From Podarcis tiliguerta (taxonomy: Eukaryota), in NCBI GenBank assembly GCA_965153285.1, contig OZ229121.1: a stretch of 64,000 nucleotides of DNA, one strand, 5' to 3'. The notes under the pieces were generated by a model. The model was given only the letters and a program-made list of their open reading frames with translations, had not been told where the DNA came from and made no database searches. Shown here piece by piece: positions 15,701-56,230 of the stretch (positions are counted from its first letter, which is position 1; every line of letters starts with the position of its first letter). The position numbers and the translations under genes are program-made.

Positions 15701-18700
15701 GAAAAAGAATTAAATTATTCACTTTCTGTGTAAAATTATTGCCTCTGATTATATGCTTAACCTGTCAATTACAGCACAGCTTTCCCTCCTTGCCCTGCCC
15801 AGTCTCATATTTGCTCTCCTTCCCCCATCATTTCATGTTTATGTTCTGGAAACTAGTCTGCAACAGTTTTTTAATGCCTGGATTGGCACCATGAAGCTCT
15901 TCTGAGGGCCCTGTTTTGACATGTGCAAAGTTGCAGACATCTCATTTCACTAGCCCAAGATGCCACTAGCCCAAGATGCCACCTTGATATTCTGCTTCAT
16001 CTCATGATTTGGGATTTGTTTGCACATCCTTAGTATTTATAGGTTTCTAATATATTTATATAAAATAAATAAAATAAAATACTTGTTTCATAATAGGCAA
16101 AATCCCAACTGAACCTCCACAGGCACCAGGAAAATGCCCTGAATCAAAACAGAACCAGATATCTTGGATTCCTTTTCGGGCACATTGCTATAAATTCTTC
16201 ACTGGTTGGTTTGATCGCCCAACAGCACACTTCAAATGTTCTCAGTTAGGTGGGTATCGTTTTGAATTAGATCATGACATAAATTTTCCATGCTAGGAAA
16301 CTCCTAGTTAGTATGTAAAACCAATGTGGTAAGTGGATGGTGTTGCAGGGAAGTCCTATCCTATGCAGGTCTATCAAGAAATATGCTCCATCAAGTTCAG
16401 TGGGGCCTATAGCTAAGTAAGTGGGTACAGGATTTTAGCCTTGGACTTTGACCAGAGAGACAGAGGTTCAATTTCTTGCTCACCCACAAACCTCACTGGA
16501 TGCCTTGGGCCAATCCCCCACCTTTTAGCTTAATATGTCTTACTGAGTTGCTATAATGATAATGCAGAAAGGAAGGAAGCCTGGAATTGACCCTGTAGTC
16601 CTTGGAGGTACTGTAGAATGGCAAGGCACAGCAAGTGGGGTTTCTGACTGACAATGCTGCCCACACCTACTTTGGGAGAGGCCAAGTTGAGGGAAGATTG
16701 GAAGAACAGGTGGTTTGTCCTTCAGAGCACTCACGTCATCAGCAAATGCCTGACTGTGCTAACCCCTAATAATAAATCTTTCTATTGTTTGGTGCTTCTG
16801 TGTGAGGTGGGTTGTGCTGTTCTACTACTTATCATCCTCATTTGTCCAACCAAGAGATTTATGTATGAATCTTACTGAATAAAAGTTAATTGGTGGGGTG
16901 GTAAAAAGCCACATGCCATATGCACACACACAATTATTAACTTTCCATTTTATTTCCTCCGCAGTACCTCTGAGCCCAGATAGAATGTTGCTCCACTGGG
17001 GCCAGAGAAGCACTGTGGGGAAACCAAAATTGTGTGTGCCAGCAACAGTGCTTTCCTTCTAAGCTGACTTATGGTCATACATAACAGATGGGCATCTAAC
17101 TTCTGCTTAGAAACTTCCAAGAAAGGGGAGTGCACCACCTCTCATGGGAGTCTTTTCCACTGTTGAACAATCAGAAAGTCAGAAAGTTCTTCCTGATATT
17201 TAGTTGGAATCTCCTTCCTTGTAATTTGAAACCAATGGTCAGTTTTGCCAGTGTGTATCTATTAAATACGTTGTTGCTTCTGTTTCGTCGTACCTGCCCC
17301 TAAGGTCCCAGAGCAATTTACAATGATAAAAGTATGCAGTATGAAAATTGTAATTATTTAAATAAATTAAAGGTGGTATGACAAATTCTTAATGAATTAC
17401 GAATTTAACTCATCTGATGTTTCCTAGGTAGCACCTTGGCTTCTATAGAAGATTTAGCTGAACTGAAATTTTTAGTGGAGCACACACAGCAAAACACACG
17501 TTGGAATTATTGGATAGGATTAATTAGAAATATTGAAGGTAACTGTTTTACAGTCAATGTTTATACTATAATAACATTTATAATACTTATTTCTAATATA
17601 GTTATTTATTAAAACAATTTATTTACAATATTCTCTATGTGGTTTACAAGAAATGCAATACAAGAAGGTAAAAATTGGTTAAAACTATAAACATTTTTGG
17701 AAGTGAAAGAGCTCAGATGATACCTAACTCCCAGAAAATCTTCGTACATCAAGCCCAACAGTTCTTCCATGTGCTTGAGGGGTCACACCAGCATAAGAAT
17801 GTAAAGGCATATGTGGTGGGAATGTTCAAAGGTGAAGTTGTTTTAGGAAAATGTTGTCCAGGGAATTTCTTTAATTGCATCTCAGAGTTTTCCTTTTTTT
17901 TTCTTTTTCTTTTTTTTTGCATTAGCTAATATATGGAAGAAATTGAAGTTAAAAAGCATATAATTTGTAACACATCTTCTAATGGCAGTACATACAGCCA
18001 TAGGTAGTAATTGGAAAACTTAAAATTTGCTAGAAATAGACTAATGTTATAACACAGTTTGGCAAACAGCCTTGCTGGAATTACTGGAGATAGACACCAG
18101 TTTAGAAATGAGACAGTTTCCTTGGATTTAGGTGGAAAGGAGAAATAGAGCTGGGTGTCATCAGCAAACTGGTGGCACAGCACCTCAAAACTCTGGACAA
18201 CCTCTCCCAGTGGTTTCATGTAAATGTTAAATAGCATAGACAACAGAACAGAACCATGAGAGACCCCGCAGGCCAATGGCCAAGGGATGTTGGAAACCAG
18301 AATATTTGTATTTAGCCTCGCAAACTAAAAAAATAAGTGTGTTGTTCCCAGTGAGCTTGAGGTAAGTGTGCTTGAAGCTATAGCTTCAGATTAGAAGAAT
18401 AACAGTCTACATTAGGAAATGGCATCTATATGTTAAAGTTCACTTTATAAAAAAGCAGAGCCAACCATTTTTCCAAAATAGTTGTGGGAGTTTTGGGTAC
18501 TGATCTAGAAAAAGAGTTTTAAGGTATGAAAAATATGTACAGGCAGCCCCCGCCCCCAATTTATGTGCATTCAGTATGTGTGTGACCATGTATACGCACA
18601 TCACACCAAATGCAGAAGTGACCTGGAAACGTCATAAAGACAGCACTGAAATATCACTAAAAGGGCAGAACGGGGTTGGGATGGGGTTTTTGCAGGCTTT

Positions 18701-21700
18701 TTTCAATGGGTTTCAATTATACACGATTTCATCAACACATGTGATGCCTTGGAATGTAACTCCCATGGAAACAGGGACCTGCCTGTAATTCCTAGTTTAG
18801 AGAAAGGAGAAAAAGAGATGTATCTACTAGTTGTTTTAAAAAGAAATACTACATCTAATCTGGTTTTGATCCCGAGCAGTGTGAGCAGTCCCTGTTCCCA
18901 TGACACTTCTATATTGTCTATATAAAAAAGCTGCTCCTGAGAGCCAGGCAGCTGTCCAAAATAGAGCTCAATATGGTCTGGGGGGATGTGGGGGGGGAGG
19001 GGCCACTGTAGCCAGAAATCAGACACCTTCCCCATACTGTTAGTGTATTCAGTGTTCTGATATAATATTGCTGGTTGCTTGCATATTTTCCAAACTAAAA
19101 ATGGTGAGTGTATTTTTAAATTGTGTTTCCATATAGAACACATTGCAATGTTTGTGCTGCTCCTTCCCTTTTTAGTCATTACAATATCTATTGATTTTAA
19201 TAATAGGATTTGATTTTAATAATAGGAGAATGGTTATGGGAAGATAAGACTGAAGTAGATTTTGTCAACTGGAAAGCAAATGAGCCCACATTCGAGCCTG
19301 AAGATTATTCCTCTTACTATAGTGGCATCTGCGCTTACATGAAGGCAGATAATGGGGAGTGGTACAAGGAACGCTGCAGAAGATCTAACGGATTTATTTG
19401 TAAAAGACACAAAAGTAAGACATTTTCTTATTTATTAGCAATAATTCTTATTCAAAACAGTATTTAATTGTTGAGGTGAGTTGTATAGAACTACAGTGAA
19501 TGTCTTAGGACAGTCTTGTGTAATTGTTTTCTGGCTAGATTCATATTACTATAAGTTTATCCATGTCATCTCTTTATCTGCCCTCCTCTTAAAGTTGGTA
19601 ACAAAGGTGTTTCTGTGAGACTACTGCCCAGAGAGTGACTGTTTCCTGTCTGCATGTTTATAATATTCTGCCTTGTTCTATCCTTACTAGCAAGTTCTCA
19701 GTGGGGGTTTTGGGGGGGGGGATGCAATCTTTCCCAACTGCCTTTCTTTTTCTTGCACATTCCATCAAATTGGTCCTCTTTTTGTGTGTGTGTCCTCCAT
19801 ACTCTTTGTTACTTCCCATTCTCTTTCCAACTTCTGGCAGACCTTACTGGAGCTTCCAGTCATTGACTCTCTAACAACAAATGGTAAAAGATAGAACCAA
19901 AGCTAGAGAATAATCATTTTCACTACTTCTATATTTAATAATGTTATGAACATTTGATAAATATATAATAGCAAAGGTTCCCACTATTATTTACAGTCCT
20001 CAGAATGGGTATATTCAACATTTTAATAAATCGTTCCTTTTATTCAAAAGGAAAAACCATTTAATAGATTCCACTTTGACAGTTTTAAGGCTCAGGTCAC
20101 CATGCCTGACTGATCTTGCTAAGCGTTTGAGTGGATTGAGTGAACAGACCGAACATTTCAAATTCAAAACTTGGTCCCCATAACATATTTTTTAATTGAA
20201 AGAAGCACATCTGGAAGCATATCTGAGGTGCATATTCATGCTTTCCCTGTAATATTATTACATATTATTACACTCACACCAATCTCAAAGTGATAAGACC
20301 TTCTCCAGTCATCTGTACTCTTCAGTTGCAAAAGGGTGACTTAAGACTCTCCAGGGCAATTTTACTTAAAGAAACAGATTTGGTGACTGTAGTAGTCCTC
20401 TTTTCTTTTTTGTCCATTACCTCCAAGGAAGGATCTTGAGAAGCAGGAGTGCAGACCTACTGAGAAATGTGTGCACGGCCCAATGCATACATGGCAGATA
20501 GACTGGCAGTCCCCATGCTAAACTCCGAGACCTTGCCATATCTCCAGAATTCAATGTTTACACTAGGCTAGAGACAAAGGAACTGACAGAGTCCTTGTTT
20601 ACCCAGGAATGTCCCATCAAGAATCAGTTTTGCTCTAGTTTCTCCTCTGAGTATTAAATAGAAGGGTAAAAAATGTGCAGCACACTAAGCTATTTCTGGA
20701 AAAGTTGAAATACAAATGTGGTAAATGGATAATAATTGCGTATTTATTTCACAAGATTTCTATATTGCTTGGTTGTAACAAAACCTCAGATAAGACTTGT
20801 AGGTAGCAATTGATTACATTGGATGGAAAAGCAGAAGGTTAGCTTATTGAGACATTCGTTCCAAAAGGTATATACTGTATTTCAGTCTACAGGGGATCGG
20901 TTCTTGGCAGAGAGTTACAAGTGTGCCACATTTATTCAGAATTCCATGCCAATGAAACCAGCAGGACTTGTTTCCAAATAAATTACTTTTACTGCAGCAC
21001 TTTTCGTAACAAGAACAATGAAATCAGCTGAGGGAGAAATGGAGAGGGACCAATTTGAAAGCATAAGAAGCAGTTATACTAAAGCTAAGCAGGTCTGAAA
21101 GTTACCTGGATATGATACTACCCCAAGCCATATGTAAACTGCCCTAATCTCTTAGGAAGAAGTGCAGGATATAAGTATACCTAGAAGAGGAATAATTAGG
21201 AGGTCCAAGGGCCCAATCTACTTGAATACAATCCTTTCAATAAACTCCCTCTCCCTACCCCCCACATTCCCCATTAATCCATTCCATGTACAGTGGTACC
21301 TCGGGTTAAGTACTTAATTCGTTTCTGAGGTCCGTTCTTAACCTGAAACTGTTCTTAACCTGAAGCAGCATTTTAGCTAATGGGGCCTCCTGCTGCTGCC
21401 GCGCCGCCGGAGCACGATTCCTGTTCTCATCCTGAAGCAAAGTTCTTAACCTGAAGTACTATTTATGGGTTAGCGGAGTCTGTAACCTGAAGCGTATGTA
21501 ACCTGAAGCGAATGTAACCCGAGGTACCACTGTAGTTTGTTTCTAGGTACTCCAGCCAATTTGCTAATGTCACCTGACCACCTATTTCTTCATTGTCAAA
21601 TGATGCTTGAAATGGCTTGCTGCTTCTTACTTAGCACAATTGATTTTAAAAGCTCACATTTATTTTTTGAAAGTTATTTCTGTAACCTGATCCTGGTATT

Positions 21701-23778
21701 CCAGAACAAAAGCTAAAGAGAAGAATCGTTCAGTGAACCATTCACATTTTAAACCCTTTTCTAACTTGTGAGAACTTAACATTCATTTCAATTTTTAAGA
21801 GCTACTCGTGGTAGAATCCATTATCTGACAATATTTGAATGGTTAATTGACCATTCCTACATTTTTTTAAAAAATAGATAATGCTGGCTGAATTTGCTGG
21901 CAAGCAGACTAACTTTCCTTTTACTCTTCCACCTTAGTCAGGCTCACTTTATTGCTAATCAAAGCTCTGAACTAAAAAAAAAGAAAAAAGGTTAATAATA
22001 TTGTCTTGCATACCTGTCTTCCCTACTATGTTGAAAACATTTGCTTCTGTAGTTTGCTATTACTGTAGATAGATAGATGATAAATAGATACACACAACAA
22101 TCACACACATCTTAAACATTTCTTTTGTTTTACAGTTATTGAAGAGACAACTAAGTCACCTACAAAAACTACAGGTAAGACTGGGTTTTTTTAAAAAAAC
22201 CTCAAGTAAAATTACAAGCATCTGTGCTATCCAGAACATTGAGCCAAACATTCTCCAAAAAGAACTTCTGACTCAAATTTCTAGGAGTGGGATTCATGCA
22301 ATAACTGGGACCATAACAAACCCTCAACTCAGCATCTTTCAGCATAGCGGTCTGTTCCTTCCTCTTCTGAATTGTTCCACTATTCTAAGGTGGTCATTTT
22401 GCTTTGAGGAATCCCCAACTCCCAGTGAAGTAATGTCTCCAGTATTTGTTTGTTTATTTTTTCAGATATCTGTATACTGTATACTGTATACTATATACTA
22501 CATACTGAAGAAGTGTGCATGCACACAAAAGCTCATACCAATAACAAACTTAGTTGGTCTCTAAGGTGCTACTGGAAGGAATTTTTTTATTTTGTTTCTA
22601 TATACTGTTTAATATTCAGAATTTCTAAGCCATGTGCATAATATGTATTTCTAAGTACTCTCAAACTGCCTCTGCTCTGCTATATGCATTTTTGTAAACG
22701 TTGTTTGATTAGAGAACTGCATCACAATATTCAGATAGATGTGAATTCCAAAGGATAGCTGTGTTTCAGTTTGTGTGTTGTTCTAGAAAGTGTATTTGGT
22801 AGGTTCACCTTTATATGTGAAATCAAATTTTCCCCATGTTCCTACCACATCCAGGCAGGCAGAAATCAACAACTGAACCCTCTTCTACCATAAGCTCTTC
22901 AGTTTATGTAGGCACTAATACATTTCCCTACTGGGGAAAAATGATAGCAACTCTCCTTTCTTCTGAAAAAACTGCTACTATGAAGCAGGACAGCTGAGGG
23001 GTGGGTGAGAGATCTCGTTGTAATGGAGTATTCTATAGTGTTTCATGTGTAAGATGGAAGCGCAAAAGGCAAATCATCTTTTATCTGCAGATGCACAGAA
23101 TAATAGTATCCTGTTTAAGAAGTAGTGCAAAGACAACTGGGGGAAGGTATACTATTGCCTTGACATTTTGGGGTTTTTTCAGTTGCATTGCAACATCCAA
23201 ACTTCTTTTGGGCTGGATTCCTTCACAGCCTGCCAAAGCTATTTTCTTTTTTTAAAAAGGGATGTACTCCTATTTTCTTTTTTACAAAAGGGGTGTACTC
23301 CTATTTTAAGAGGAATCTGAGCTACTCCAGTGCATCTTTTTTGCTTCTGCGTCCCCTTCCCTCCTTGCAGTCAGGTGACCATTTCATTGGCTGGTAGGTT
23401 TTCAGCACACTATGCTTATGTGCAGAAAATACCACCCAGACATCCTTCCTGTTCTTACAAGGGGGTTGTCACTGGTTTGCCATAGTATATAGTATTCAGT
23501 GTTGTCTATTATATTTTTAATATATATTACATTTTCCCGCACTGGCAGAGCAAGAAGATAGTTCTGCATCAGAACGTGGCAGAGTTATAACGGTGGTTTT
23601 CCCAGTGTTCTTCATCCTCATCCTCATTGGTGCAGGCATTGCACTTTATATTGTCTACAGAAGAAGATTTCAACAACAACAAACTACTGGTAGCTTTGAC
23701 AATGCCTTGTATCATGACAATAGGATTCTTATTCAGAATAATGAGTCAGAAGTATACGTGGAGGACAAAGGAATGTAA
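1716..23778 (+). CDS. MRC1: Macrophage mannose receptor 1-like (MRC1/MRC1L family), 3' half of a spliced gene, 13 coding exons; 5' part lies upstream of the window
   Basis: 13 exons splice in frame with matching phases into CTLD5-CTLD8 (WIGL motifs, conserved Cys), a Thr-rich stalk, a TM helix and a tail with FDNALY. Colinear with human MRC1 as recalled. Ortholog vs paralog unresolved. Confidence 0.93.
4377..4477 (+). CDS. MRC1: MRC1-like exon ([33 protein letters not shown])
   Basis: ctatag acceptor; non-canonical AG|GCAAGT donor gives the phase 1 required by the next exon. Confidence 0.9.
4819..5533. mobile_element. Non-autonomous hAT element
   Basis: cggtgccttttt...aaaaaagcactg; perfect 8-bp TSD ataattgc. 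Confidence 0.8.
5665..7348 (+). mobile_element. 5'-truncated non-LTR retrotransposon (RTE-X-like LINE) RT and C-terminal Zn-knuckle region
   Basis: [44 protein letters not shown]...LLTCPSY; AATAAA and (GAT)n tail; TGA at 5770 and frameshift at the poly-C run near 6012-6025; clade assignment tentative. Confidence 0.88.
7778..7920 (+). CDS. MRC1: MRC1-like exon ([22 protein letters not shown]...[13 protein letters not shown])
   Basis: tttcag/gtaact; end of CTLD5, linker and start of CTLD6. Confidence 0.92.
8662..8776 (+). CDS. MRC1: MRC1-like exon ([38 protein letters not shown])
   Basis: ccccag/gtcagt; matches human CFKIFGFMEEERKNWQEARKAC. Confidence 0.92.
9672..9702. repeat. (GA)n microsatellite
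   Basis: direct reading. Confidence 0.9.
10167..10312 (+). CDS. MRC1: MRC1-like exon ([49 protein letters not shown])
   Basis: attcag/gtaagt; WIGL motif of CTLD6. Confidence 0.93.
11639..11741 (+). CDS. MRC1: MRC1-like exon ([34 protein letters not shown])
   Basis: ccttag/gtatgt; end of CTLD6. Confidence 0.9.
12364..12440 (-). mobile_element. Sauria SINE 3' fragment
   Basis: aaaggtaaaggtaaaggtacccctg...gactctagggttgtgcgcccatctc. Confidence 0.7.
12622..12854 (+). CDS. MRC1: MRC1-like exon ([10 protein letters not shown]...[10 protein letters not shown]...VWIGLNSNM)
   Basis: ctatag/gtaaga; CTLD7 first half. Confidence 0.93.
14054..14219 (+). CDS. MRC1: MRC1-like exon ([55 protein letters not shown])
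   Basis: ttttag/gtaagc; CTLD7 second half. Confidence 0.93.
14897..15323 (+). mobile_element. L2/CR1-group LINE 3' end with (TTA)n tail
   Basis: [12 protein letters not shown]-type C-terminus, gccgccctgagccc...gggagggcgggatataaataaa, then (att)n. Confidence 0.75.
16097..16249 (+). CDS. MRC1: MRC1-like exon ([34 protein letters not shown]...KCSQL)
   Basis: taatag/gtgggt; matches human TEPPQLPGRCPES...WIPFHGHCY. Confidence 0.92.
   Translation, partial: AKSQLNLHRHQENALNQNRTRYLGFLFGHIAINSSLVGLIAQQHTSNVLS
17060..17240 (-). mobile_element. CR1 3' fragment
   Basis: minus-strand [18 protein letters not shown], a typical CR1 ORF2 C-terminus. Confidence 0.65.
17428..17538 (+). CDS. MRC1: MRC1-like exon ([37 protein letters not shown])
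   Basis: tcctag/gtaact; CTLD8 WIGL. Confidence 0.92.
18085..18285 (-). mobile_element. L2/CR1-group RT fragment
   Basis: [24 protein letters not shown]...[13 protein letters not shown]. Confidence 0.8.
18540..18785. mobile_element. Tc1/mariner-type MITE
   Basis: ta|caggcag...ctgcctg|ta. Confidence 0.65.
19226..19414 (+). CDS. MRC1: MRC1-like exon ([16 protein letters not shown]...GFICKRHK)
   Basis: aatag/gtaaga; end of CTLD8. Confidence 0.92.
21291..21532. mobile_element. Tc1/mariner (Tigger-like) MITE
   Basis: TIR cagtggtacctcgggtta, TA TSD. Confidence 0.9.
22136..22174 (+). CDS. MRC1: MRC1-like stalk mini-exon ([13 protein letters not shown])
   Basis: strong polypyrimidine tract, ttacag/gtaaga, 39 nt, phase 1-1. 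Confidence 0.85.
22505..22600. mobile_element. Penelope-like element fragment (second copy about 35554-35650)
   Basis: ctgaagaagtgtgcatgcacac...ttggtctctaaggtgctactgga occurs at both sites; family call from recall. Confidence 0.6.
23549..23778 (+). CDS. MRC1: MRC1-like last exon: TM helix and cytoplasmic tail with FDNALY endocytosis motif, TAA stop
   Basis: ggcag acceptor; hydrophobic [22 protein letters not shown] followed by RRR; FDNALY resembles human FENTLY. Confidence 0.93.
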
Positions 23779-30567: not shown

Positions 30568-30913
30568 GTTTCAAGTTTAAAGCTGTGAACTGCAAACCAG
30601 AATTCAACACCACCAACGCAAACACAGACTACGGGAGGAAATATGTTTCCTGACTACCTGTCTCATTCTTTGGATAGTATCTTTGACTTTTATATTTGGA
30701 CCAAATACTGAAGGAATGCATCCTGATAAAGAACTGAAGGAAGACAACAGCTCTGCCTCTCACCACAGGTATCTGAAAGTTGATTTAGGTATCATGTCAG
30801 TTAACAACTATAGTGAACACCACCAGAACCAAAGAGGAGAAATTATCAAGAAAATACTGGAGAGAACTTTATGTCCACAAAGGATTGGGGGGGTGCAAGA
30901 GGACTGTAATCTG
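30568..30913 (+). pseudogene. SLC39A12: SLC39A12 first coding exon remnant; start codon ATG>ATA at 30641
   Basis: gaa ATA TGT TTC CTG ACT = (I)CFLT vs human MCFRT; ends IIKKILERTLCPQRIGGVQEDCNL|gtcagt vs human [24 protein letters not shown]. Confidence 0.85.
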
Positions 30914-33127
30914 GTCAGTGAGTCAAGTGGTAGATGGAAAATTGTATGGATAACTTAGTAAGCACAGCATTTTCATGTGATTCACTTCTCATCTCAGCAA
31001 AGAAGGATTGTGTTGCTATTTATATATTTATTCATTTTATATGTTGTTTTCAACAGATGTACTATATTCTTCAGGTACATGTGTACATTTATTTGTTACC
31101 ATTTAGTTTTTTCTGCTTCAACTGTAACACTTACATAGACACTAGAAAGGGATTCACAAACACTAAAATGGTTCTCTGGAACTTCCTAAGCTATTTTATT
31201 TTGCAGAGCTAAATATATAACCAAAATTATCTTAGATCCATTTGCCATTTCCTGCAAGCCTCAAGTTCAAAATGTTGGTAATGTGCCGGTGATTCAGATT
31301 AACAGTCTTTTAGAATGTCATTCAAATAAATGGTATTTGGATGAAAAGGATGTCATCTAGTTGGGCCCTTAGAGTATACTGCCTATTACAAGCATGTCCT
31401 TTCTGTCTGTCAGATTTTGGAGGGTATAACACCTGTTCTTAGACTTTTTAAAAACCAATGTAAGACAGTGTTTAGAGCAAGGGGGCATTAAATATGTGGC
31501 TGAGAAGGGGCATGATCTAAGGAGAGTCCCAAGGGCCAGAGTTCTGAAGGGCTGCATTTGGTCCCCAGAACTAAGGTTCCCCACTGCTGGTATAGAGCAT
31601 TTAGACATGGTAAGGGGTGTGGCCATAGAAGCCAACTCCTAGGGGCCAAGGGGTCTTCGCTCCCCCAATAAAATATTTGAGGGGCCTGGGTCCCCCCCCC
31701 CAAAGTTGATGGGTATTGCCATTCAAATAGGGTGCATGTGCCGCATCATGTGATTGATTATGCAGGGTGGGGCTTACCCCTCCTATTTTATTCAAGGGGG
31801 CACCACTGGGTGTGGCTGAGGAGCAGGTGGGAAACACAGGTTCAAATTCCAACACAGCTATGAAGTTTACCAGATAGCTTTCAGCAAATTCTTCTTCTGC
31901 TGCTTAAGCATTAGATATTAACTCCCAAAATGCAACAATAAAGAAAGACCTCATCACACAGTTTTTCTACCTCACTACTGATGCCACTTCCAGAACCCTG
32001 CATCATAACCTAACACCATGGCTGCTAAAACGGTAGTAGCCAGGAAGTGGTAGCTGTGGTGAAAAAAGCAGGTACAAGAGTAACTGGGGTGAAGTCTAAG
32101 GAGAGGAAAGGAAGGAGGTCAGCACCAATTTTCAGCCCAACAAACAGAGATAAACTTTAAGAGGTGCTTGAACAAATTGCTTCTGTTTACAGAACCTCTC
32201 CAAACTGCTAAATGCATTTTGAGTGTGGTATATTCTTCATCAGATGTAATAACCAATTGTTCCCTTCTGGGAAGGGAGAAAATGAAGAAGCGATGAATCA
32301 TAATTGCATTTGCACATACTTTGCATGTGGTAAGTCCCTGGTTCCAATTTTATGTGTTTGTTTTTCATTTAAAGATCAAGGAGCAGGCGGTGTGAGAAAA
32401 TGGTGCCTGAGTCCGTGAAGAGCTACTTTAAGCCAGAGTGGGCAATACTGAGTTTAGATAGTTGATAAAAGGCAACTTCTTTTAAAGAGTTTTTCTTTTT
32501 AGGCACAGCAAAGGGTTCTGATGAGGAGCAGTGGAGGCTGATCCATAAGGGCAAATGGATAGGATTGCCATATTTCAAAAAGTAAAAACCAGGACACCTA
32601 AAAAGATGCTGACTTGTCTAAGAAATTCCTCCCCAGAAATTAATTTCACCTTTGAAATCCCCATAATGTCTGGAAAAATCTGGATATAATCGCAGCCCTA
32701 CAACCCTCTCCAGCAACGTAGTTCTGCCTTCAGCCAACCTGCCTTCTTATTTATGATTAGTTGCTGCCATCTTCCTCAGCCTCAGCTTTGTCCCTGTAGA
32801 ACTCAGCAGGGAGCATGATGGTGACAAAACTAGAATTAGTCATTGCCTTTGGCTCCACCTGCTGTTGGTCTCCTTGCCCTTAGCTCTTATAAGTCCCAAT
32901 GGACACCAACCACTGATGAAGAGTGTGCTAACAAATCAGAAAACTTGGAGTCTTTCTTTTGGAGTATACCTCTGTTGGCTCATCCAGACTCGCCTGCTTG
33001 TTTTGCAGCAAAACTTGCGGGTAACATTCAAGACCTGAGGCAGTAATGTGTACCCTTTCTAATATTAATTGAGATTTGCTGCTGAGCCGTGTTTTAAATT
33101 TTATGTGGGGTTTTTTTTTATTCATAG

Positions 33128-33272
33128 TGCCTTGAACCAGCCACTTTGAAATTAGTTGCAGGAGGAGATTTAGAAGTCTATTTTAGTGAAGAAGTCTATT
33201 TTAGTGAAGAAGAATGAAACTGAAGATGTAGTGGAATCAAAAAGGAAACATTTAAAAATATCTGAATACCAG
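33128..33272 (+). pseudogene. SLC39A12: SLC39A12 exon remnant with internal deletion, 18-bp tandem duplication, frameshift and TGA at 33215
   Basis: CLEPATLKLVAGGDLE ~ CFEPDALLLIAGGNFE; in another frame NETEDVVESKRKHLKISEYQ ~ NETEDILAFTRQYFDTSQSQ; AG and GT intact; 145 nt. Confidence 0.85.
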
Positions 33273-34803
33273 GTAAAAGTAAATTGAAGGAATGCACAGG
33301 TAAAATGATGAGCAGATTCTTGTACTGTAGCTAGCTGGTACGCACGCATGCCTAAAGTACAATGGCAGCTACAAAGGGTATTACCTTTTTTTTTTTTTAC
33401 ACCATCACTTTTTTTTAATTAAAATCACTAAACACATTTGATGGGCAGTGCTGCCCAAACTTCAAGGATATGGTGAAACATGAAATCAACACAAAGCAAT
33501 GAAGTTCATAGAAAATGAAATTTGCTTATCAGCTTTATCAATGAGCTTTTCAACTGTATGTACTGTAGATGAAAAGCAGTGGCAAAAGTGGGCATGAACT
33601 GGAAATTTAGAATGCTGGCCAAACCTTGCATTATTTTCCATAAGAACCTCATCCATTTTATGTCTGTCAGGATGGGGCAAAATCACCACAGCAATACTGT
33701 AGTTGGAAATGTATTCAAAATATCTTTCCTGAGGCTGGGGTTCTATGGATCAACTCTCTGCTAGTTAATCTGTTTTATATCTGACTGCTAAAAGGTTTGT
33801 GAATTGCTCAGTATCTAAAGTGAGTAAAATAGCTTTCTTTTATATAATGGAGAACATCCCATTCTCCTTGATTAAACATTCAATTTAAAGGCCAATTTGC
33901 AGGTTCCTTTAGACTGCATGTGATCATCACAAAACAAGAAGCAGGATTATTAAACTGGCTGTTAGAATTAATATATGTTGCTGTTGAACAACAGCCACAA
34001 GCCTCATTCTCCCCCCAACACCAGAAAAATGTAGTTTCCCCAATGTCTGGGTGCCCACAATGATACTATTTAATAGATGTTGCAGCAGCTAGCAAGCTTT
34101 CTCATTGTAGCCATCCTGAAAGGGTAACAGATAGTTGCAACAGTAGAGAGGCCACACTCATTTGTACCTGCAAGAATTTGTACTCCTGTACTTCTGAATT
34201 CTAATCTCTGTGTTCATCACTACTTCCAACACACATAGTTTGTACTTTTGCATTGTAGACTGATACTCCTACAGATGACCCATTTATTGTGCATTCATTT
34301 TGGTTTTCTTGCACAAAGCTTACGTAGAAATTAGACTATCTGGTCTTTATTAAGCATTCATCCTGATTTCCTTGAATGGTGTTTATATACCTTTCCACTA
34401 ATCATTCATTCACCCCACACTTCTAAGTGCATTTCCTTGTCATTTTGCTAACAGCAATAAGCCTGGTTTGTTTTTGTTTTGTTTTTAAAAAAACACAACT
34501 GGATTTGTTGTGCTAGGGCAGCACAGCACTTTAATCCATTTTAATTGTTCAACTTGAATGCTTCTTGCAAAATACTCTCAGTCAGGAGACAACTTTAAGC
34601 CCCATTTATGAAAATGCTCTCATGTGTCTTTTGAATATCATTATTTGTACTACAGTGTGATTAAGTTAATTAAATGTTACCGTATGTTTGTATATTTACT
34701 TCTTCTTTTTAACATCCTATGAGCGTTTTGGTGAATGGTGGTAAAGGAATCTCTTGATAAATAATACATTAAAAATACTCATCCAATTTTCTTCTGTTTT
34801 CAG

Positions 34804-34976
34804 TGTGTACACATAAGGGTTCTGGAAAGGAAAGCTGCTTTTCTGAACATTAGTAGTGCTGATGAAAGTACCATTCCCCAGCAGGGTGCTGCCATTCTCA
34901 GGTTGGCCCTGCATGGCCTGCATGTTTACCTTCACCATAAATTCTTCAAACAGTATTAATGAACTCCATATAACAG
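34804..34976 (+). pseudogene. SLC39A12: SLC39A12 exon remnant with deletions/frameshifts, TAA at 34957
   Basis: CVHIRVLERKAAFLNISSADESTIPQQGAAILRLALHG ~ [38 protein letters not shown]; LPSP lies in a shifted frame. Confidence 0.8.
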
Positions 34977-36283
34977 GTAGATTTCCAAATATATCTTTGC
35001 TTTCATATCTTTGGCTGGGGCTGATGAGAACTGGAGTCTATTATCTGGAGAGCCTCCTCTCTGTACTATAGTTTAACCCTCATAGAATCATACCCTCAAA
35101 CCAAGTAAACAGGGTGAAATCAAACTGTCTTATCTATGGGATTAAATTGGCAGGAATAAGACAAAAAACAAGATTTACATGGTTTCTAGGTCGACTAGTA
35201 ATTCTGAAAGCATCTTTAGAGAGAGCCATTTTTTCTAAACACACTTTATTCTTGTTTCTCTTAATTGCCTCATTAATGACATGAGCATCTTCCTTTGAGA
35301 AAGTAATTGCTAAGAGTGATATATTTCATGCTGTTACTAAATTGTATCTTCTGTTTTTCACACTTACATAAAAAACATTATTTGTCACTAGTAACAGATG
35401 GTAGAAGTTTTTGCAACTGCTAATTAATTTAAGAAACAAAATTTTATTCCTTCAGATAAAATGCCATACAATTAGGCCATCAATATTCAAGAAAGTAGTT
35501 GATAAAATAAAAGCCATTAGAGACCAAATAAGTTTGCATGAAAAGTCAGGTATCTGAAGAAGTGTGCATGCACATGAAAACTTATACCCAGAACAAACTT
35601 AGTTGATCTCTAAGGTGCTACTGGACAATTTTTAAATTTTTATTTATTTATTTTGATACAATACATTATTTTTCAGGAATAAAAAAGTGATATGACTTTT
35701 AATCCATTCTCCACCTTGTCTCATTTCTCACTATTTAACAGTACAACGATTGCATATACTATTTTTTAATGTTTTGAATGAGCATCGAGGTAACAAAAGT
35801 ACTGATTCTGTCACCTTTTCTCTACTTGTAAGACGCACATATATTCAAGCATTACATTTGCCTCCAATGGTTTAGTGTATTATCTTACATTAGGCATAGC
35901 TAACATATAATCTTCAGATTCACTTGATCCTGTTTTCCCAATTTTACTTTGCCTACTGCAAGATGACCTGCTCATTTGTTCAGCCTCTCTGCTTTGCTTT
36001 GCTGTGCTGTGCTGTGCTTTGTTTCATCTGCCTTACATCACAGTCTTGCCTAATCCTCCCAGCATATATGAGCTCTGACCTATGGTTTGTACCCTGGGTC
36101 AGGCAAAAATCCTATTTAATGGAAATGCTGTTGAAATTCATGGAACTCACTTTCACTTTATGAAGTGCTTCTTTGCCCCCTTTTTATTTGACAATTGGAT
36201 TTCAAAATCTGAGCTTTCAAGTTAATTTAACAACAGAAATGCAAGAATTATTTTTAGCATTGCTTTCATCTTTTCTTCAATAC

Positions 36284-36456
36284 AATATGGCTATAGCACT
36301 CTTGCAGTTTTACTTATGACAACTGGATCTATGTTTGGCACAACTCTCATTCTATTTAATTCCTGTCAAGAATGTTACACCCTCATTTTACAGCTATTTG
36401 TGGGGTTAGCTGTAGGAATTCTTTCTGGAGATGTCCTACTACATCTTATTCCACAG
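36284..36456 (+). pseudogene. SLC39A12: SLC39A12 TM1-TM2 exon remnant, frame open but acceptor AG>AC
   Basis: [57 protein letters not shown]|gtaat; preceded by ttcttcaatac instead of ...ag. Confidence 0.92.
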
Positions 36457-37744
36457 GTAATATTTGTATTTCCTTAAGTTTCAGTTCTTGCACATTAAAA
36501 CTGCTGATTCCTTCCCCAAATAAATACATTCTACACACGCACTAAACTTCAGTATTTTATGATTTGTCTAGATGCAAGGCAGAATTTGAGTATTTTGTAA
36601 GTCAGGTAAGAGGGAGGGGGCCCCTGACTTTAAATATGTTTCAAAATATGCTGGTAGGTTTTTGTTTTTGGGATGTTATTGCTTTATTACATTGTATCAC
36701 ACTTTTGTTTAATATTGTATTTTTATTTCTCAGTTTTATTGTTATGTTGTATTTCCCCCCCCCCTAAACTATTTAGAGATGATTTTAAGTATTAAGCAGT
36801 ATACAAATATATGAAATAAATGGATGTGAAAACAACTATACAGAAATGTGGAATAGTCCTACCTCCACCATTAATTGAGCCAGAGTCCCTCCCCATGTGG
36901 AAGAACTCTCCACATAAATCAGCATGGGTGGAAAGCCTTTCTCTATGCCATCCAAATAGTTGAATGACAGGGAAGCATTGCTGCTATAGGTGGCAGGAAG
37001 TGTAGACATGGTGCGTGAGGCTATCCCATTGTTTCAAAACATGTGAGGGGTACATGTGAACTTCCCACTTGTTATACCTCACTTGTTTATATCACACTAC
37101 CTATATTTATCATTTTTCTTACACAATAATGCAATCTTCAATTTATCATGCTGCTGCATTGTACGACACATCTTCCACTACTAGTTCCACAAGAGTTCAT
37201 TGAACCACACTGATACAAATTCACTCCTGGTTCTCTGGATTATAAGAGTATAACTTGTCATTAAGCATTTGGAATGGCAATTCTACCTCTATGTATCGAG
37301 GTAGAAACAAGTTAAGTGTAGGTACATCAGTCACTACAACCCATACTTAACATTTATTAACTCAACCAGGATGTTTAAGGATTGCAATTCCCTTAAGTTA
37401 TTTTTAAACATTGCCCTTAATTTTTTAAATATAGAATCAGAATATGTTGACATTAAAACATTTCCTGTAATTAGCGAGTGCCTCCAAGAATTCTGCAATG
37501 TAACAATGCAAGTATATTCCTTAGAGGCAAGGAGGACCAAGAGATAAAACCTGCCCCATGTATTAAATGGATTGTTGATGATGAACTAGGACATAGTTTT
37601 ATCTTCAACAATTGGAAATACACCAAAAGGAAAATGTACAAAGAAAAATGATTTCTCTCTGCCAAATCTTCTAAAGCACACCATCAGGACAATGATCACA
37701 AACTAAACTGGCCTACAGTGCAATTAGTATATGTATATCTACAT

Positions 37745-37880
37745 CAGGCTTCCTCAACCTCGACCCTCCAGATGTTTTTGGCCTACAACTCCCATGATCC
37801 CTACCTAGCAGGACCAGTGGTCAGGGATGATGGAAACTGTAGTCCCAAAACATCTGGAGGGCTGAGGTTGAGGAAGCCTG
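37745..37880. mobile_element. Palindromic hAT MITE
   Basis: caggcttcctcaacctc...gaggttgaggaagcctg; TSD atctacat/gtctacat. Confidence 0.85.
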
Positions 37881-38545
37881 GTCTACATGGAAGTAAGTCC
37901 TTCTGACTTCAGTGAGGCTTAATCCCAAGCTTTTGTGTACACAATTGCAACCCTAATGATTTCAAGCAACTTTAGTAAAATAAACTACCATTAATATTTT
38001 AATATGTGTAAAACTTTATCAAGAACTGGGGGCTGCATCCCTGCTTGCTTTATTTGCCAACTCCACTTAACCTTCTCACCAAAGCCACCCACTCCTTTCT
38101 TCATACCTTGCCACAGACATCCTCAATCTCCTTACTCCTTGACAAAGACACCCCCATCCCTGTGCTCCTTCTTCAAAGCTACCTTCCTTCCTTTAAACCT
38201 TGCCGAAACTACCACCTCTCCCCTCCCCTTAGATCTAGTAAAACCTCCACTTGGTAGCCTGGGCTACCCAACTGTCTGGCTGCTCACTGACTGGCCTGGG
38301 CTGCTGTTCCTTCACAAGCCTTGGATACCCACCTGCCCACCCACCAGCCTGATATGAATGCTGCTAATTAGATGGAGACATAAGCAGTTTCAAATACACA
38401 TGTAACCATGTGGACAAGCCCATGGTCAACCAAACTATTGCTGTCAGGGACTGGCAGGGCTCTGACGAGCGTGTGACGAAGGCAGGGGAACTGAAGGCTG
38501 ATTCAGGAGAGGGGGCCAGTGATTTGGGGTTTGGGGTTCTGGGGT

Positions 38546-38790
38546 TAGCAGTTTGAAAGCACGCCAGTGCAAGTAGATAAATAGGTACCAATGCAGTGGG
38601 AAGGTAAATAGCATTTCTGTGTGCTCTGGTTTCTATCACGGTGTTCTGCTGTGCTACAAGCAGTTTAGTCATGCTGGCCACATGACCAGGAAAGCTGTCT
38701 GTGGACAAACGTCAGCTCCCTCGGCCTGAAAGCGAGATGAGCACCGCAACCCCATAGTAGCCTTTGACTGGGCTTAACAATCCAGGGGTT
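38546..38790 (+). mobile_element. Sauria SINE, 5'-truncated
   Basis: shares core with the 42434 copy. Confidence 0.8.
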
Positions 38791-39468
38791 CAGTTCTCTT
38801 TACATACTACATAATCACATTCTATGCTACCCATCATGGCTATAAAATGACATTTTCCGTTAAATTATGGGTATTAGGGGTGGCTAACCACGGCTTATAG
38901 AGCATATCTGCCCACCAATATTTTTGTCACTTAAAAAAACCAACTGCCGTTTTTCATCCCACCCTGCGATGTCTTGATGCCATAAGCTTTTTTGTGGAAC
39001 CTTAAGGACTTAAATTTTGACCATTTAAAAAGAAAAAATAATTTAATTTCACAACTCTCAATTCTCATTACAAAATTTTGATCCAGGAATCAAAGCTATA
39101 TTTTGATTCAGACGTAAAAATGAATCCTAGCGATTCAGGATTGCCATCTTACAACACAAATGTATGCATGGATCAGATTGCAATCTTAATGAAGGATGCT
39201 TAAAATTTGGGTTAAGAGAACCTCCCCCTGCCACACACACAACATATCTCTGTCATGTAATACCTTGAACCTTGCAGAAGGAGCCAGATACACGTCATAT
39301 TTTTCAGTATTTTTATCCACAGAGGTGTATGTATTTCTGTTGATTGTACCACTGCAACTGTTTTTACCTATTTATTGTGCTTTACATTTTGTTCTTAGAG
39401 TTATTTTAAAACTCTGAGCTCCTCTGAAAGTCTTTGAACTAATGGAGCAGGATGAATTAATGTGTAAC

Positions 39469-39837
39469 TAGGGATGGAAGAGAAATTTGATTCAGTTCCC
39501 ACTTAAAGGGATCTAATTCATACTTTCATACTTTCAAAAACACTATGTGAACCAAAACAGAACCATCCTTTAGTAATTCTCTGAATTTTGCAATTCAGTT
39601 CTTCAGCCAAGTAATGTGTACCAAAATGTACACATATTATTGAAGATAATATACAAAAATGAATTATATTAGGGAAAACTATGTTGTAAAAATGTGTACA
39701 TTAGGAGAAATTTACACAAAGAACCTGATGAATTTTCAAAAGGATATATTTTTAAAAATCATAAACTGATGTGGAAATTTGGAGAAATTAAGACTGGAAA
39801 AATAAGAAACTGAAATTGACAGATTCACCCATCCCTA
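39469..39837. mobile_element. AT-rich non-autonomous hAT element (second copy about 54005-54376)
   Basis: tagggatgg...ccatcccta; TSD tgtgtaac/tgtctaac. Confidence 0.75.
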
Positions 39838-41221
39838 TGTCTAACTTCATTTAGCCCAGATGGAAACAAATAGGTATATAACTGCATCTCGTAATGATAC
39901 ATTTCAGTTTCCTTTAATCTAGGAAATTTCAAAACATGACCCCTAAATGCTCTGGTATGATCCTTAGCAGTCCCCTGGCATATAGGACTTGCTATCCATT
40001 TCAGGGATGGCATAATGCTGTCTTTTCTTCAGGGCTAGTTTCCATGCTATTATCTTAATCCATCTTTGGCTGTTTCTGTGCTGTTCAATCATCATACTCT
40101 AATAACATAAAACATATATTAGGTAACAGAACAGTAATTTGCTTCAATCTAATTGTGCCTGCATTGGGGATAATTCTAAGAAAGTGTCCTCCTTTATCTC
40201 ATCATCTCTCTCTGCATCAAAGAAATAGATATGTGAGCTTTTTGCTTTTTTTGCAGTTTTGACAGGAAAGGCTTCCAACTTCTGCATTTCTAGTAGCTGA
40301 AGAGCAATGCTATGGCCCAGTTTAAGGTTGACAGAGCATACATAGCTACAACTTCTAAGGGTGCTTCCAAACAATGGCTATTTTTAAGTTTTAAATTTAG
40401 ACTGCACATTTATAGTTGATTAGGTCAACCTCAACAAACCTGCCCAAGCCCCCAAATAGGACTTTTTTGCAAAAAAGAAAGTGACAGGAAAGCTTGAGAT
40501 TTCATTGAAGCATTAGCTAAGCTCCCTGCTAACAAATCAGAATGAATGCTCAATAAACAGTCAACATTATCTTATCTCTCCATAAACAAAAGCTCAATAA
40601 ACAGGTCATCTAGAAGTGATCCAAGAGTTATTACATTAGAAGTAGAGTGGTTGCACAAGTGGCGCATCTCAAGACTGTGCAACAACTGGTTCCTTTAAGG
40701 ACTTGTGTAACACCATTTTTCTTATTCAAATGTGGATTTTTACACTAGAACCTCCTTTCCGGCAGCCAGGAGTGAGATTTAAATCCCCCAATGGATTGTT
40801 ACAGGTCCAAGCACTGAATATTTTACCTAAGCCCTAACCCTCCACCTCCTTAAAAAAAATTACTTATAGTGTGGATTTCTTCTGAAATGGATCTAAATTT
40901 ACAACTATACATATAAATCAGCTTTAAAAAAGCTCAGTTTTCTATCCTTATATATCTTTTTCTTCTCAGTCTCTTTGCTACCTCTTCTTCTCCAATGTCC
41001 TTATTTTGTTCTTATTATTTTGTATTTGGTTTCCGTGTAAGGCAACAACCACTTGATTCCCCATTTTAATTTGGGACATGCATTAAGCAGACTTAGCATA
41101 CTGTCACTTTTTCCAGCTTAAGAAACTGACTACAAGCAGTAGCCATCTATATACAGGTTACTTCCATAAGCACTTATTTTACTATTTTCTATTATTAGCA
41201 GCTACCCATAGTAAGTATGTA

Positions 41222-41463
41222 CAGTGGTACCTCGGGTTACATACACTTCAGGTTACATACGCTTCAGGTTACAGAGTCCGCTAACCCATAAATAGTGCTT
41301 CAGGTTAAGAACTTTGCTTCAGGATGAGAACAGAAATCATGCTCCGATGGCGCGGCGGCAGCAGGAGGCCCCATTAGCTAAAGTGGTGCTTCAGGTTAAG
41401 AACAGTTTCAGGTTAAGAACGGACCTCCAGAACGAATTAAGTACTTAACCAGAGGTACCACTG
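41222..41463. mobile_element. Tc1/mariner (Tigger-like) MITE, same family, opposite orientation
   Basis: same TIR, TA TSD, 242 bp. Confidence 0.9.
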
Positions 41464-42433
41464 TATATGGAATAGAGTACCATCAACTGAATGGCTTTTG
41501 CTTAATATTGCAGTACTGGTCAATGATAACAATGATTTCTCCTGTTTCTCCATGGTCTATCTTTAGCAAATACAGTAAAGTCATGGAAAACAAATTGTTT
41601 TCCATCTAGTCTGGGCTTATTATGGTGCTCAGCAGCCCCATAACCCCTGCATGCCAAAGTACAAAATGTTAAGGCCATTTAGTTCTGTCTTTTACTACAG
41701 CCATTACATATACATATACATACACATATACATAATCTATCTCAATAGAACAGTCTCAGATGTGGCATGCTAAGACTTTGACCTAGCTAATGTGCATAGC
41801 CATTTTCAAACTTAAAGTGATAAAGAGAATCTTTTATTTTCATGGTACTCTTGTTCTATGCTCTAATGTGCTTTTCATGATTTTTAAATGGATATACAAG
41901 TTGACATCTAGGTTTAGTCTGTAAGTTGGCAAAGAAATCTAGGAAGCCTGCCAATATTACCAAGCGTGAAGAACTACCAGAAAGCTAGGGGGGGTAAGTT
42001 CAGAACCAGGTGAGGGTAGTCAATGGGTGGGTCTAAAACCCCTGCTGAGTTAGAGACTTGTTACTTGTTACTTGTTACTTGTGTGATTGATAGATCCAGC
42101 TAATCAATGTTGAACCCTAGAAAGTGAGGGAGATAAGATTTGCCCCACTGGCAAGATCCAGTTCCCCATGCCTGCTATAGGTGATCTTTCAGATGACCTT
42201 TAAAAACCAATGTGCAAGATCAGAACTGGGTCCTAAGCTTCTAATTCCGAACATGAATCACTTCTTAACAAGGACCTGCAGATCATGTGGGATATAGTAA
42301 TATGATTCTGCATCACATTTCCAAGTGAGAAAGACTGGGAAATCAGAGGGAAAGCACGCACATTAACTTTTGTCAGCGAGCCAGGCTGGAACGCTAGGAA
42401 CTGAGATCCCTATGTAGTTATTTAAAACAAAAT

Positions 42434-42797
42434 GGGATGTGGGTGGTGCTGTGGTCTAAACCACAGAGCCTAGGGCTTGCAGATCAGAAGGTCGGCGGTT
42501 CAAATCCTTGCGATGGGGTGAGCTCCCGTTGCTCAGTCCCTGCTCCTGCCAACCTAGCAGTTTGAAAGCACGTCAAAGTGCAAGTAGATAAATAGGTACT
42601 GCTCCGGCGGGAAAGTAAACAGTGTTTCCGTGCGCTGCTCTGGTTTGCCAGAAGCGGCTTTGTCATGCTAGCCACATGACCCAGAAGCTGTCTGTGGACA
42701 AACGCCAGCTCCCTCGGCCAGTAAAGTGAGATGAGCACCCCAACCCCAGAGTCATCCGCAACTGGACCTAACGGTCAAGGGTCCCTTTACCTTTACC
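42434..42797 (+). mobile_element. Sauria SINE, full length
   Basis: tRNA-like head with B-box ggttcaaatcc, core gtgcaagtagataaataggtac, (ACCTTT)n tail, degenerate TSD. Confidence 0.9.
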
Positions 42798-43113
42798 CTT
42801 TAAGAACAAATTACAGTACATTACATGCACGTTTACTCAGAAGTAACAAGAGGACATACTCCTTAGTAAGTGCATTTAGGTTTGCGCTGTTATGCAAATA
42901 TAAAACCTTCTTTGGCCAGAACATACCCTTGCTTCCCCCCAATTTTCAGGCATTCACATAAAGAACGTAAGGGAAAGGTGATTTCAATGTCACATATAGA
43001 AATGGTGTAACATTTTGCACAGAAAGGTCCATCTTAATTATAGCCACTACTGTGAAACAGTACCAGCCTTTTATGGGCTAATTAATATTTTATGTCTCTC
43101 TTCCTCTCCTTAG

Positions 43114-43241
43114 GAGATTTTGCAGTACTGTTAAGTACAGGTCTTTCTTCAAAGATTGCCATTTTAATGAACTTCTTAAGTGCTCTAACTGCTTTCATAA
43201 GACTTTACATTGGCCTTTCAATATCAAAAGATCCTTGCATT
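43114..43241 (+). pseudogene. SLC39A12: SLC39A12 penultimate exon remnant, 3'-truncated
   Basis: [43 protein letters not shown]; homology stops before the expected QDWIFTVTAGMFLYLSLVEM. Confidence 0.9.
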
Positions 43242-43776
43242 AATTACTACACCACACTGACTTTCTGTCAGCGTCCAACAGTTGGATAGCTTAGCTCATA
43301 AATATGGCGCTGTACTACTGGATCAAGTCTCTGGATGCTTCTGGACTACTGCTAATTTCGGGTAGGATTCAATTATGTAACAGCAAATGTAGGTTGCACA
43401 ATTAAAGTTGATTTGCAGCTCTTGTGTACCAAACCCACTTCCAACCAAAATAGGACTTTCTGCTTTTAGGAAAGCGTTCATCAAACATTCTTTTCTTGGA
43501 AGGATTCCTTTCAAAACTCTATGCATGTAAACTTCCAGTAATTCTTTATAGTGATGGCGTAAGAGCTGAAATCTCGGAACTGTATTTCTCATTTGATGAA
43601 GTTGAAAATATGCTCCAAGCTTACTACAGATTTGAATCTTATATTTAGAAACCTTGGGTTTAAAAGTCTTTACTAATGAAGTTTGTCATGTTTCCCATAA
43701 GACTCAGCCTGCCCCACCCACAGTCCCAGATATTAATATATTTGGCTCTCTTACTGCTGCCTCATTCTTTTTTTAG

Positions 43777-43917
43777 CTTCCTGAAATGACTCACATCCAG
43801 ACACAGAGGCCCTGGTTGATGTTTCTGCTACAGAACCTTGGATTACTATTAGGCTGGTTCTCCCTCTTGCTTCTAACTATATTCTTTCTAACCTTCTCAC
43901 ATTGTACATGGACATGA
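43777..43917 (+). pseudogene. SLC39A12: SLC39A12 last exon remnant, C-terminus replaced
   Basis: ttttag|[35 protein letters not shown] then [11 protein letters not shown] instead of YEQNIKI*. Confidence 0.9.
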
Positions 43918-44191
43918 CTTGTAGGCTGATGCCAATAATGGATCTTTGGATTGCAAGCATTGTTTGATTGCTTTTGGTGCAGAAATCAAGATCACATTGA
44001 ACTTATGATAGGAAAGAAGGAATGAGATGTCAAGGAGATGAGTAAATATATGACCTTTAGAAGAAATCTGAAAACAGCCTTGTACAGGGAAGCTTTTTAA
44101 TATTTAATGTTTTATTATGTATAAATGTATGTTAAATGCTGCCCAGAGTGGCCAGGGCAACCCAGTCAGATGGGTGGGGTACATTTAATAA

Positions 44192-44192
44192 A

Positions 44193-44271
<79 letters not shown>
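44192..44271. repeat. (ATT)n microsatellite, tail of a LINE/SINE 3' fragment
   Basis: direct reading. Confidence 0.95.
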
Positions 44272-44272
<1 letters not shown>

Positions 44273-45029
44273 CAACTCATGACAAGTGGCAAGCATGGTA
44301 ACAGAGGACTGGAGCTAGTGAGCTTGTTCCCATCATGCAGCCTCCCTTCATGTGGCAATTTAGCCGTCATTGTTAGTGCCTGAAGAGGTCTGCTAACTGT
44401 GCAGTACAATCCTGTGGATTTCTACTAAGGCTACTAAGCACAAATGAGTTCCTTGGAACATTCCCAAGGAAGTGTGTATATGATTGGTGTGTATAGGCTT
44501 ACCATGTATGGAAGAACCATGTATGGCAACTTGAGCTCCTTAGCAGAAAGGTGCAATATCAATGTTAAAATAAATAAATATGAAAATGAATTGCACTGTG
44601 AAATTGGTCATTACTTTCATTCGGCAAATCACAGTTCCCATGACTCTTCAAAATAAGCTCAAAGTAGTATCAAATTAGTGATGAAAATCACAGTTCCCTC
44701 TTTTTAATTTGTAACCAATTTGGCAGAATAAAGTATTTTCCAGTATGGTGGGAAAGCAGTAGCTCAGTAACAGAACATGAATGTTCCCAGGTTCGATCTT
44801 TACTATCCAGTAGTTTATAGTAGTTTATTCTAAGCCCAATCATGAGTCAAATCAGACACCAATGATATAATTGGGTGCACAACTGTGCCAGCCCTCACTG
44901 AAGTACTTGAACTCCCAGTTTGATGACTATCAAAAAACTTAAATGCTTAAATAAGAATGGTACATAAGCAAGGTACTGCTACAGGATACAGCAGGTATAC
45001 AAGAAGCTAAACGCAAGAAAGATGGGAAA

Positions 45030-55700: not shown

Positions 55701-56230
55701 TGTGGCCCTCACACTTAAAATTTACTTTTAAGATTGCTTATTGCATACATGGCATGTGGTCTAGTTTTGCCCTCAGGATGGGCAATACTAAAGATAAATG
55801 GAGCAATAGTCTGGCTTATATAAAGCAGCTTCCAGTGTATGAATGAAACAAACCCAAGAGTAGGAATAAATGGTTCCCAATTATTACAAATACCATAACT
55901 ATGCAGTTCTGCCATCTGTCTATCAGAGAGAGATAGTCAAATAAGTAGCCAACTCCACTGGGGTGTGTGGGTGGGTGAGAGAAGACAATCCTCTTTACCC
56001 ATCCCTATCTATTCCTGTATCTGCAAGAATCAGGGTTACCTCTGTCTGCTTGCTGTTCCTTCATGAGGAAGCATTTGGCTTATCGTTACTGCAACTTCCT
56101 CTTAGGCTTATAAACTATTGGGAGGCATGTGGAAACCACTCCAGCAGCCACTTCTCCAGTTGCATTGTTCTTGTACTGCTAGTCAGACTACTCATGAGTA
56201 AGCAACTGGTTTAGCAGCTTCTGAAAGTCT

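Follow-up and report, generated by a model that had tools for sequence, protein, structure and literature searches.

The zinc transporter ZIP12, encoded by SLC39A12, has been found in almost all vertebrates examined and is absent from zebrafish (Chowanadisai 2014, PMC4222902). Its gene lies in the vertebrate order mrc1, slc39a12, cacnb2 (PMC4222902), and in birds, turtle and Anolis the MRC1L array abuts SLC39A12 (PMC4229073). A ZIP12 knockout rat is viable and is reported to be protected from hypoxic pulmonary hypertension (PMC7395987, citing Zhao 2015); ZIP12 is also a candidate drug target in that disease. Gene loss in squamates has been surveyed by Salve et al. 2026 (PMC13005343), who listed 53 genes as absent from every one of 261 squamates; SLC39A12 goes unmentioned in their main text. 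Here we describe a 64,000-nucleotide (nt) stretch of DNA from the lacertid lizard Podarcis tiliguerta (GenBank assembly GCA_965153285.1, contig OZ229121.1), referred to throughout as the window, which contains six colinear exon relics of SLC39A12 on the + strand between 30641 and 43917 (Table 1). We read these remains, with a probability of roughly 0.88, as a unitary pseudogene.

Like the absence from zebrafish, this would be a natural loss of ZIP12 in one lineage while its relatives keep the gene. No trace of the zebrafish gene was described, whereas in this amniote the decayed gene still occupies its locus with readable lesions, and its loss should therefore be datable by lesions shared across lacertids. 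The squamate-wide losses by segmental deletion (PMC13005343) are the same kind of event, in that an ortholog is missing and deletions contribute. The loss of ZIP12 is narrower, as many squamates keep the gene, and differs in that a readable pseudogene remains. Text searches of the literature turned up no description of a lizard ZIP12 pseudogene, and SLC39A12 or ZIP12 occurred together with lizards, squamates, Podarcis or pseudogene only in PMC4222902 and PMC4229073.

The nearest intact counterparts are the ZIP12 proteins of other squamates (Rhineura floridana, Salvator merianae and Elgaria multicarinata, XP_063003687.1), with which the relics share visible exon boundaries and genomic neighbourhood. 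The first coding exon and all three membrane exons were 74–89% identical to Rhineura or Elgaria ZIP12, with lower values for the two frame-broken ectodomain relics. The relics differ in that they have no start codon, broken frames, one lost acceptor and only about half of the coding exons, those for transmembrane segments (TM) 3 to 5 with the HEIPHE motif being among the missing ones, and in that their amino acids have changed about five times faster. The LIV-1 sister paralog ZIP4 (SLC39A4) has the same plan as ZIP12 (a ZIP4/12 ectodomain followed by a Zip membrane domain), but it resides at another locus and is only 44–51% identical to the TM1-TM2 exon of the window.

Exon relics and their orthology

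The window was searched by tblastn with 14 sauropsid ZIP12 proteins, that of Elgaria among them, and with a profile hidden Markov model (HMM) built from 14 ZIP12 proteins and run with filters off on all open stretches of at least 10 amino acids on both strands. Both methods agreed on the same six pieces with every query (E values 3e-33 to 3e-4), and neither found a significant ZIP12 match elsewhere in the window on either strand. The original prediction, which had been drawn from the DNA letters, placed six exon relics in the right order and strand between an MRC1-like gene and CACNB2 exon 1, and this arrangement was recovered in full, with the identity of the CACNB2 exon being probable. Among the + strand open stretches between 30 and 44 kb, three were evidently ZIP-like. 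The Pfam Zip family (PF02535) matched as two fragments, at profile positions 6–61 and 217–260 of 323, both scoring below the gathering score of 35.1 bits because the matching pieces are fragments. All pieces were searched singly; rows in which they were joined by X served only for the alignment, tree and counts. The window sequence contains 0 N and 0 masked letters.

About six of the twelve ZIP12 coding exons are represented by these relics. They are spaced 0.5–6.6 kb apart, and acceptors or donors were recognisable at 8 of the 11 expected junctions. Together with an exon boundary at GDFAVLL, the spacing and splice signals reproduce the conserved exon-intron layout of the gene. A processed pseudogene, or intron-less retrocopy, was also considered and was ruled out by the intron-like spacers between relics that keep their splice signals.

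Table 1. Positions of the SLC39A12 relics, of the intervals where further exons were expected, and of the flanking genes in the 64-kb window.
Feature	Position	Strand	Evidence or content
Upstream neighbour, mannose-receptor family (MRC1-like) C-type lectin (Lectin_C) exons	10112-17609	+	Match mannose-receptor-family proteins
First coding exon relic (= human exon 2; signal peptide and ectodomain start)	30641-30913	+	Profile E 1.7e-30
Second coding exon relic	33128-33272	+	Split over two frames, E 2e-4 and 3e-4
Third coding exon relic	34804-~35023	+	E 8e-9; similarity fades past ~35023
Expected place of profile positions 256-373	35024-36281	+	No relic; rest of ectodomain including PAIIQQLLSCSC region (PAL-motif half)
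TM1-TM2 exon relic	36284-36456	+	E 3e-33; Pfam Zip 30.2 bits
Expected place of profile positions 434-555	36459-43111	+	No relic; TM3, His-rich loop, TM4, TM5 with HEIPHE
Penultimate exon relic (TM6-TM7 part, begins at GDFAVLL)	43114-43262	+	E 4e-23; Pfam Zip 27.4 bits
Last exon relic (TM8)	43777-43917	+	E 5e-18
Downstream neighbour, probable CACNB2 exon 1	61006-61113	+	Met-initiated open frame, G+C-rich stretch, then GT donor

The family of the relics was established using the TM1-TM2 piece (36286-36459) as a query against 1.84 billion representative proteins. The best matches were named ZIP12 by their sources, at 71–91% identity and including the 650-amino-acid Elgaria ZIP12, and a second tier at 44–51% was named ZIP4. 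Broken down by group, identity of the TM1-TM2 exon was 88–91% to squamate ZIP12, 71–76% to lungfish and gar ZIP12, and at most 51% to ZIP4. The three membrane exons taken together were 81–91% identical to squamate ZIP12, with ZIP4 as the next-best family at about 48%. ZIP4 or another LIV-1 paralog was thus ruled out by percent identity.

Position points the same way, as the relics lie on the same strand as, and between, the lectin exons and the probable CACNB2 exon 1. By identity and position, the assignment of the locus as the SLC39A12 ortholog holds, in keeping with the orthology that had been proposed for it, and the gene order invoked for that proposal, MRC1, SLC39A12, CACNB2, is indeed published as conserved in vertebrates (PMC4222902, PMC4229073).

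Lesions, missing exons and relaxed constraint

The first coding exon reads ATA at 30641-30643, where 10 of 14 relatives show Met1 (in MCFLT, MSFLT or MYFLT), so that the predicted change of ATG to ATA was found as described. There is no in-frame ATG upstream in its open frame, and the closest ATG, at 30642, lies in another frame. The exon is otherwise open over 91 codons, the same number as in relatives, has a GT donor at 30914, and is 62% identical to Elgaria and 74% identical to Rhineura over the shared part. The second coding exon measures 145 nt versus about 282 nt in relatives, a net loss of 137 nt or about 47 codons; it retains its acceptor AG and its donor GTAAAA, and undergoes a frame change followed by a TGA at 33215-33217. 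An exact 18-bp tandem duplication is also present in this exon (33173-33190 and 33191-33208). The duplication adjoins the large internal deletion and may be a trace of how that deletion came about. The third coding exon retains its acceptor and has lost 12 nt in frame and about 20 nt with a frameshift; it carries TAA TGA at 34957-34962, and one conserved Cys is replaced. These second and third exons correspond to the two for which frameshifting deletions and stops had been claimed.

The TM1-TM2 exon is whole and open and has a donor, GTAATA, with an acceptor dinucleotide of AC, not AG, at 36282-36283. Read through the acceptor boundary, 13 of 13 genomic open-reading-frame fragments from other vertebrates gave E (the G of AG plus AA), and the window gave Q (C plus AA), which bears out the AG to AC change put forward earlier. 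The same exon has T>I and A>V replacements at sites that are invariant from fish to mammals among the fragments seen; across the membrane exons, the changes at vertebrate-invariant sites are T>I, A>V, G>R and A>T.

The penultimate exon had been described as truncated, and this stood for its 3' side, where the final ~12 codons and the donor are unrecognisable, but not for its 5' end, which is intact, with a strong pyrimidine tract and AG at 43112-43113. Isoforms of Varanus and Hemicordylus that skip this exon confirm its start at GDFAVLL. Within the exon one codon is lost, an invariant G is changed to R, and W/I/F are changed. The last exon has an intact acceptor; the terminal YEQKIKI of relatives is replaced by an unrelated 11-residue tail ending at a TGA (43915-43917), in agreement with the predicted loss of the terminal heptapeptide. 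Over the relics as a whole, neither a start codon nor a continuous frame was found, given the ATA at Met1, the two frame-changed exons and the in-frame TGA, TAA and TGA.

Going beyond the original prediction, about half of the coding exons leave no trace in the window. Profile positions 256-373 and 434-555 had no match, either with the profile HMM on both strands of the window or with tblastn confined to the expected intervals. Of the HEXPHEXGD motif and the TM4 metal site, GD alone survives, at the start of the penultimate exon. One weak colinear match at 39140-39265 (31% identity over 42 amino acids, E 8) was judged to be chance, since exons of the same age keep 81–89% identity. For the same reason, namely that the surviving membrane exons of the same age are still 81–89% identical to relatives, the missing exons would have been deleted and not worn away, and the exons for TM3-TM5 and for the PAL-motif part of the ectodomain are taken as having been removed by deletion.

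Several interspersed repeats occupy the interval between the TM1-TM2 and penultimate relics (38546-38789, 41220-41479 and 42434-42806). The copy at 41220-41479, in a former intron of the dead gene, belongs to a young repeat of ~260 bp that is also present at 21275-21534 (- strand) and 59191-59411 (- strand), with copies that are 92–93% alike. The other two belong to a second family, 75–87% alike, which has a further copy at 56219-56589 (- strand).

As read from the DNA, the remains cannot give rise to a zinc-transporting protein, because TM3-TM5 with the HEIPHE metal-binding motif are gone; in addition there is no start, two frames are broken and an acceptor is lost.

Amino-acid replacement provided a measure of relaxed constraint. 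In a maximum-likelihood tree built on 350 of the 353 relic-covered columns, the window, Rhineura and Salvator formed one group (support 89/95), with Rhineura nearest to the window (72/77), a position that fits a lacertid. The end branch of the window was 0.38 changes per site, compared with 0.053 on the Rhineura branch; the median was 0.078. In Tajima-type counts over 275 sites with Elgaria as the outgroup, 42 replacements were specific to the window versus 8 specific to Rhineura (P 1.5e-6), and four further outgroups gave 37–39 versus 6–11. The excess was present in both the ectodomain (29 versus 6) and the membrane part (13 versus 2). Among 141 columns that are invariant in 14 other sauropsids, 23 were changed in the window, or about 19 once the 4 changes in a misaligned stretch are set aside, compared with 0–6 in intact species. 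Such a pattern indicates that the gene has long been free of selection.

Both ZIP12 models of Salvator merianae lack the 17 residues that carry HEIPHE. Salvator also stands on a long branch (0.22) and has 12 changes of its own at columns that are invariant in the other species. Either the gene model contains a gap or constraint on the tegu gene is likewise relaxed.

On this reading, ZIP12 still worked in the ancestor shared with worm lizards and tegus, and purifying selection then ceased to act on it along the line of descent to Podarcis tiliguerta. The damage since then comprises loss of the start codon, small frameshifting deletions, stop codons and a splice-acceptor mutation, together with at least two larger deletions that removed about six of the twelve coding exons.

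Distribution among squamates and competing explanations

ZIP12 was present in the protein collection for at least 13 squamate species, namely Elgaria, Varanus, Sceloporus, Phrynosoma, two Anolis, Tiliqua, Hemicordylus, Rhineura, Salvator and four geckos. As judged from these protein models, related lineages have an intact ortholog. No lacertid ZIP12 was found among the best 120 matches (proteins of 357–1137 amino acids), where by identity it would rank near the top. A control search with Anolis ZIP4 retrieved ZIP4 of Lacerta agilis (in a cluster of four), of several snakes, and of Pogona and Eublepharis, and their proteomes are present in the collection because their ZIP4 was retrieved. These results indirectly support a loss that would be common to at least some other lacertids, and they speak against an intact copy elsewhere in the genome.

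The ZIP4 proteins retrieved included those of Ahaetulla, two Thamnophis, Python, Crotalus, Protobothrops, Pogona vitticeps and Eublepharis macularius. No ZIP12 of snakes, Pogona or Eublepharis was among the best 120 matches, an observation that serves as a lead only and that could reflect further losses, annotation gaps or an effect of how the matches were listed. It is conceivable, though we consider it doubtful, that squamates have lost ZIP12 several times: in lacertids, and perhaps in snakes, agamids and eublepharid geckos as well. If this were true, a transporter reported to be needed for amphibian neurulation would be repeatedly dispensable within one amniote order, and the species concerned would be natural knockouts in which substitutes for ZIP12 could be sought.

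Sequencing runs were compared with positions 30600-36599, an interval that covers four of the relics and one of the exon deletions. Runs from the same species contained 0.96 and 0.83 of the sampled words of this interval for one sample, 0.68 for a second sample and 0.49 for another study, and three related species contained 0.41–0.47.

The lineage-level loss that had been proposed is borne out by the lesions, the missing exons and the 42 versus 8 replacements, while the term unitary is backed indirectly. Several considerations weigh against the reading as a unitary pseudogene. The lesions were all read from the assembled DNA sequence. The absence of a copy elsewhere was judged from the protein collection, the evidence from the assembly being the 64-kb window itself, and the absence of a lacertid ZIP12 from that collection hinges on genome annotation and on the length window of 357–1137 amino acids. 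The exon at 61006-61113 was assigned to CACNB2, as a probable identity, by its likeness to the N-terminus of the human beta-2 subunit. In RNA runs, no run contained the stretch 30600-36599, which is weak evidence either way.

The relics might be a decayed duplicate, with a working SLC39A12 that was moved or duplicated elsewhere in the genome. As the direct evidence is confined to the window, this reading deserves some weight, yet the relics sit in the ancestral syntenic slot, a single ZIP12 is usual in vertebrates (PMC4222902), and no lacertid ZIP12 of at least 357 amino acids was among the best 120 matches, though a lacertid ZIP4 and the ZIP12 of at least 13 squamates are in the collection. 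We regard a decayed duplicate as improbable, and infer that there is no intact copy of SLC39A12 elsewhere in the genome. An origin of the lesions in assembly or sequencing errors, or in one null haplotype that is still polymorphic, appears marginally less probable again. The runs that best contain the interval may come from the assembly's own sample, which leaves room for such an origin; the second sample of the same species, however, contains 0.68 of its sampled words, and there are at least 10 independent lesions of different kinds, two multi-exon deletions among them, in a window free of N. The earlier argument that the neighbouring MRC1-like exons are free of such errors was covered by spot checks. 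A five-fold excess of replacements over all relics, moreover, cannot be an assembly error, and for a young null allele it implies too long a neutral history.

Least probable of the three, in our view, is the persistence of a reduced function, for example through a non-coding RNA or a short peptide encoded by the well-preserved membrane exons. In its favour, all three of these exons retain 81–89% identity to relatives, and four of the six relics retain both or one of their splice signals. Identity of this order is, however, the expected remainder of slow neutral decay, and the membrane exons are changed at the vertebrate-invariant sites listed above and show the 13 versus 2 lineage-specific changes of the transmembrane domain. 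There is also no start codon, continuous frame or metal-binding motif, and the lack of an RNA run with the stretch argues weakly in the same direction. The locus thus probably yields no useful expressed product, and a unitary pseudogene of a lacertid lizard remains the reading we favour.

As a lineage-specific gene loss the case is solid but ordinary, with precedents in zebrafish and in viable engineered knockouts. A lizard lineage that has long lived without ZIP12 would show that an amniote can do without the gene, and it directs attention to back-up zinc importers in brain and lung, of which ZIP4, retained in Lacerta, is a possible example. With regard to genome annotation, an apparently empty intergenic stretch would hold a readable gene fossil.

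Flanking genes and repeats

Upstream of the relics, one of the lectin exons (12567-12920, + strand) had LY75 (DEC-205), not MRC1, as its best solved-structure match (E 8e-22), presumably because the solved structures of MRC1 cover its N-terminal half only. Downstream, a search of the PDB with 61006-61113 returned only chance matches, and CACNB2 was left unconfirmed by this search. The probable CACNB2 exon lies within the only G+C-rich stretch of the window (60000-62000; 0.53 versus ~0.40 elsewhere), which resembles a CpG-island promoter.

Two minor repeats lie close to the relics. A 69-bp copy at 35554-35622 is 90% alike to one at 22505-22573, and a trinucleotide microsatellite at 44170-44280, just downstream of the last relic, translates into stretches of L, I, Y or N depending on the frame.

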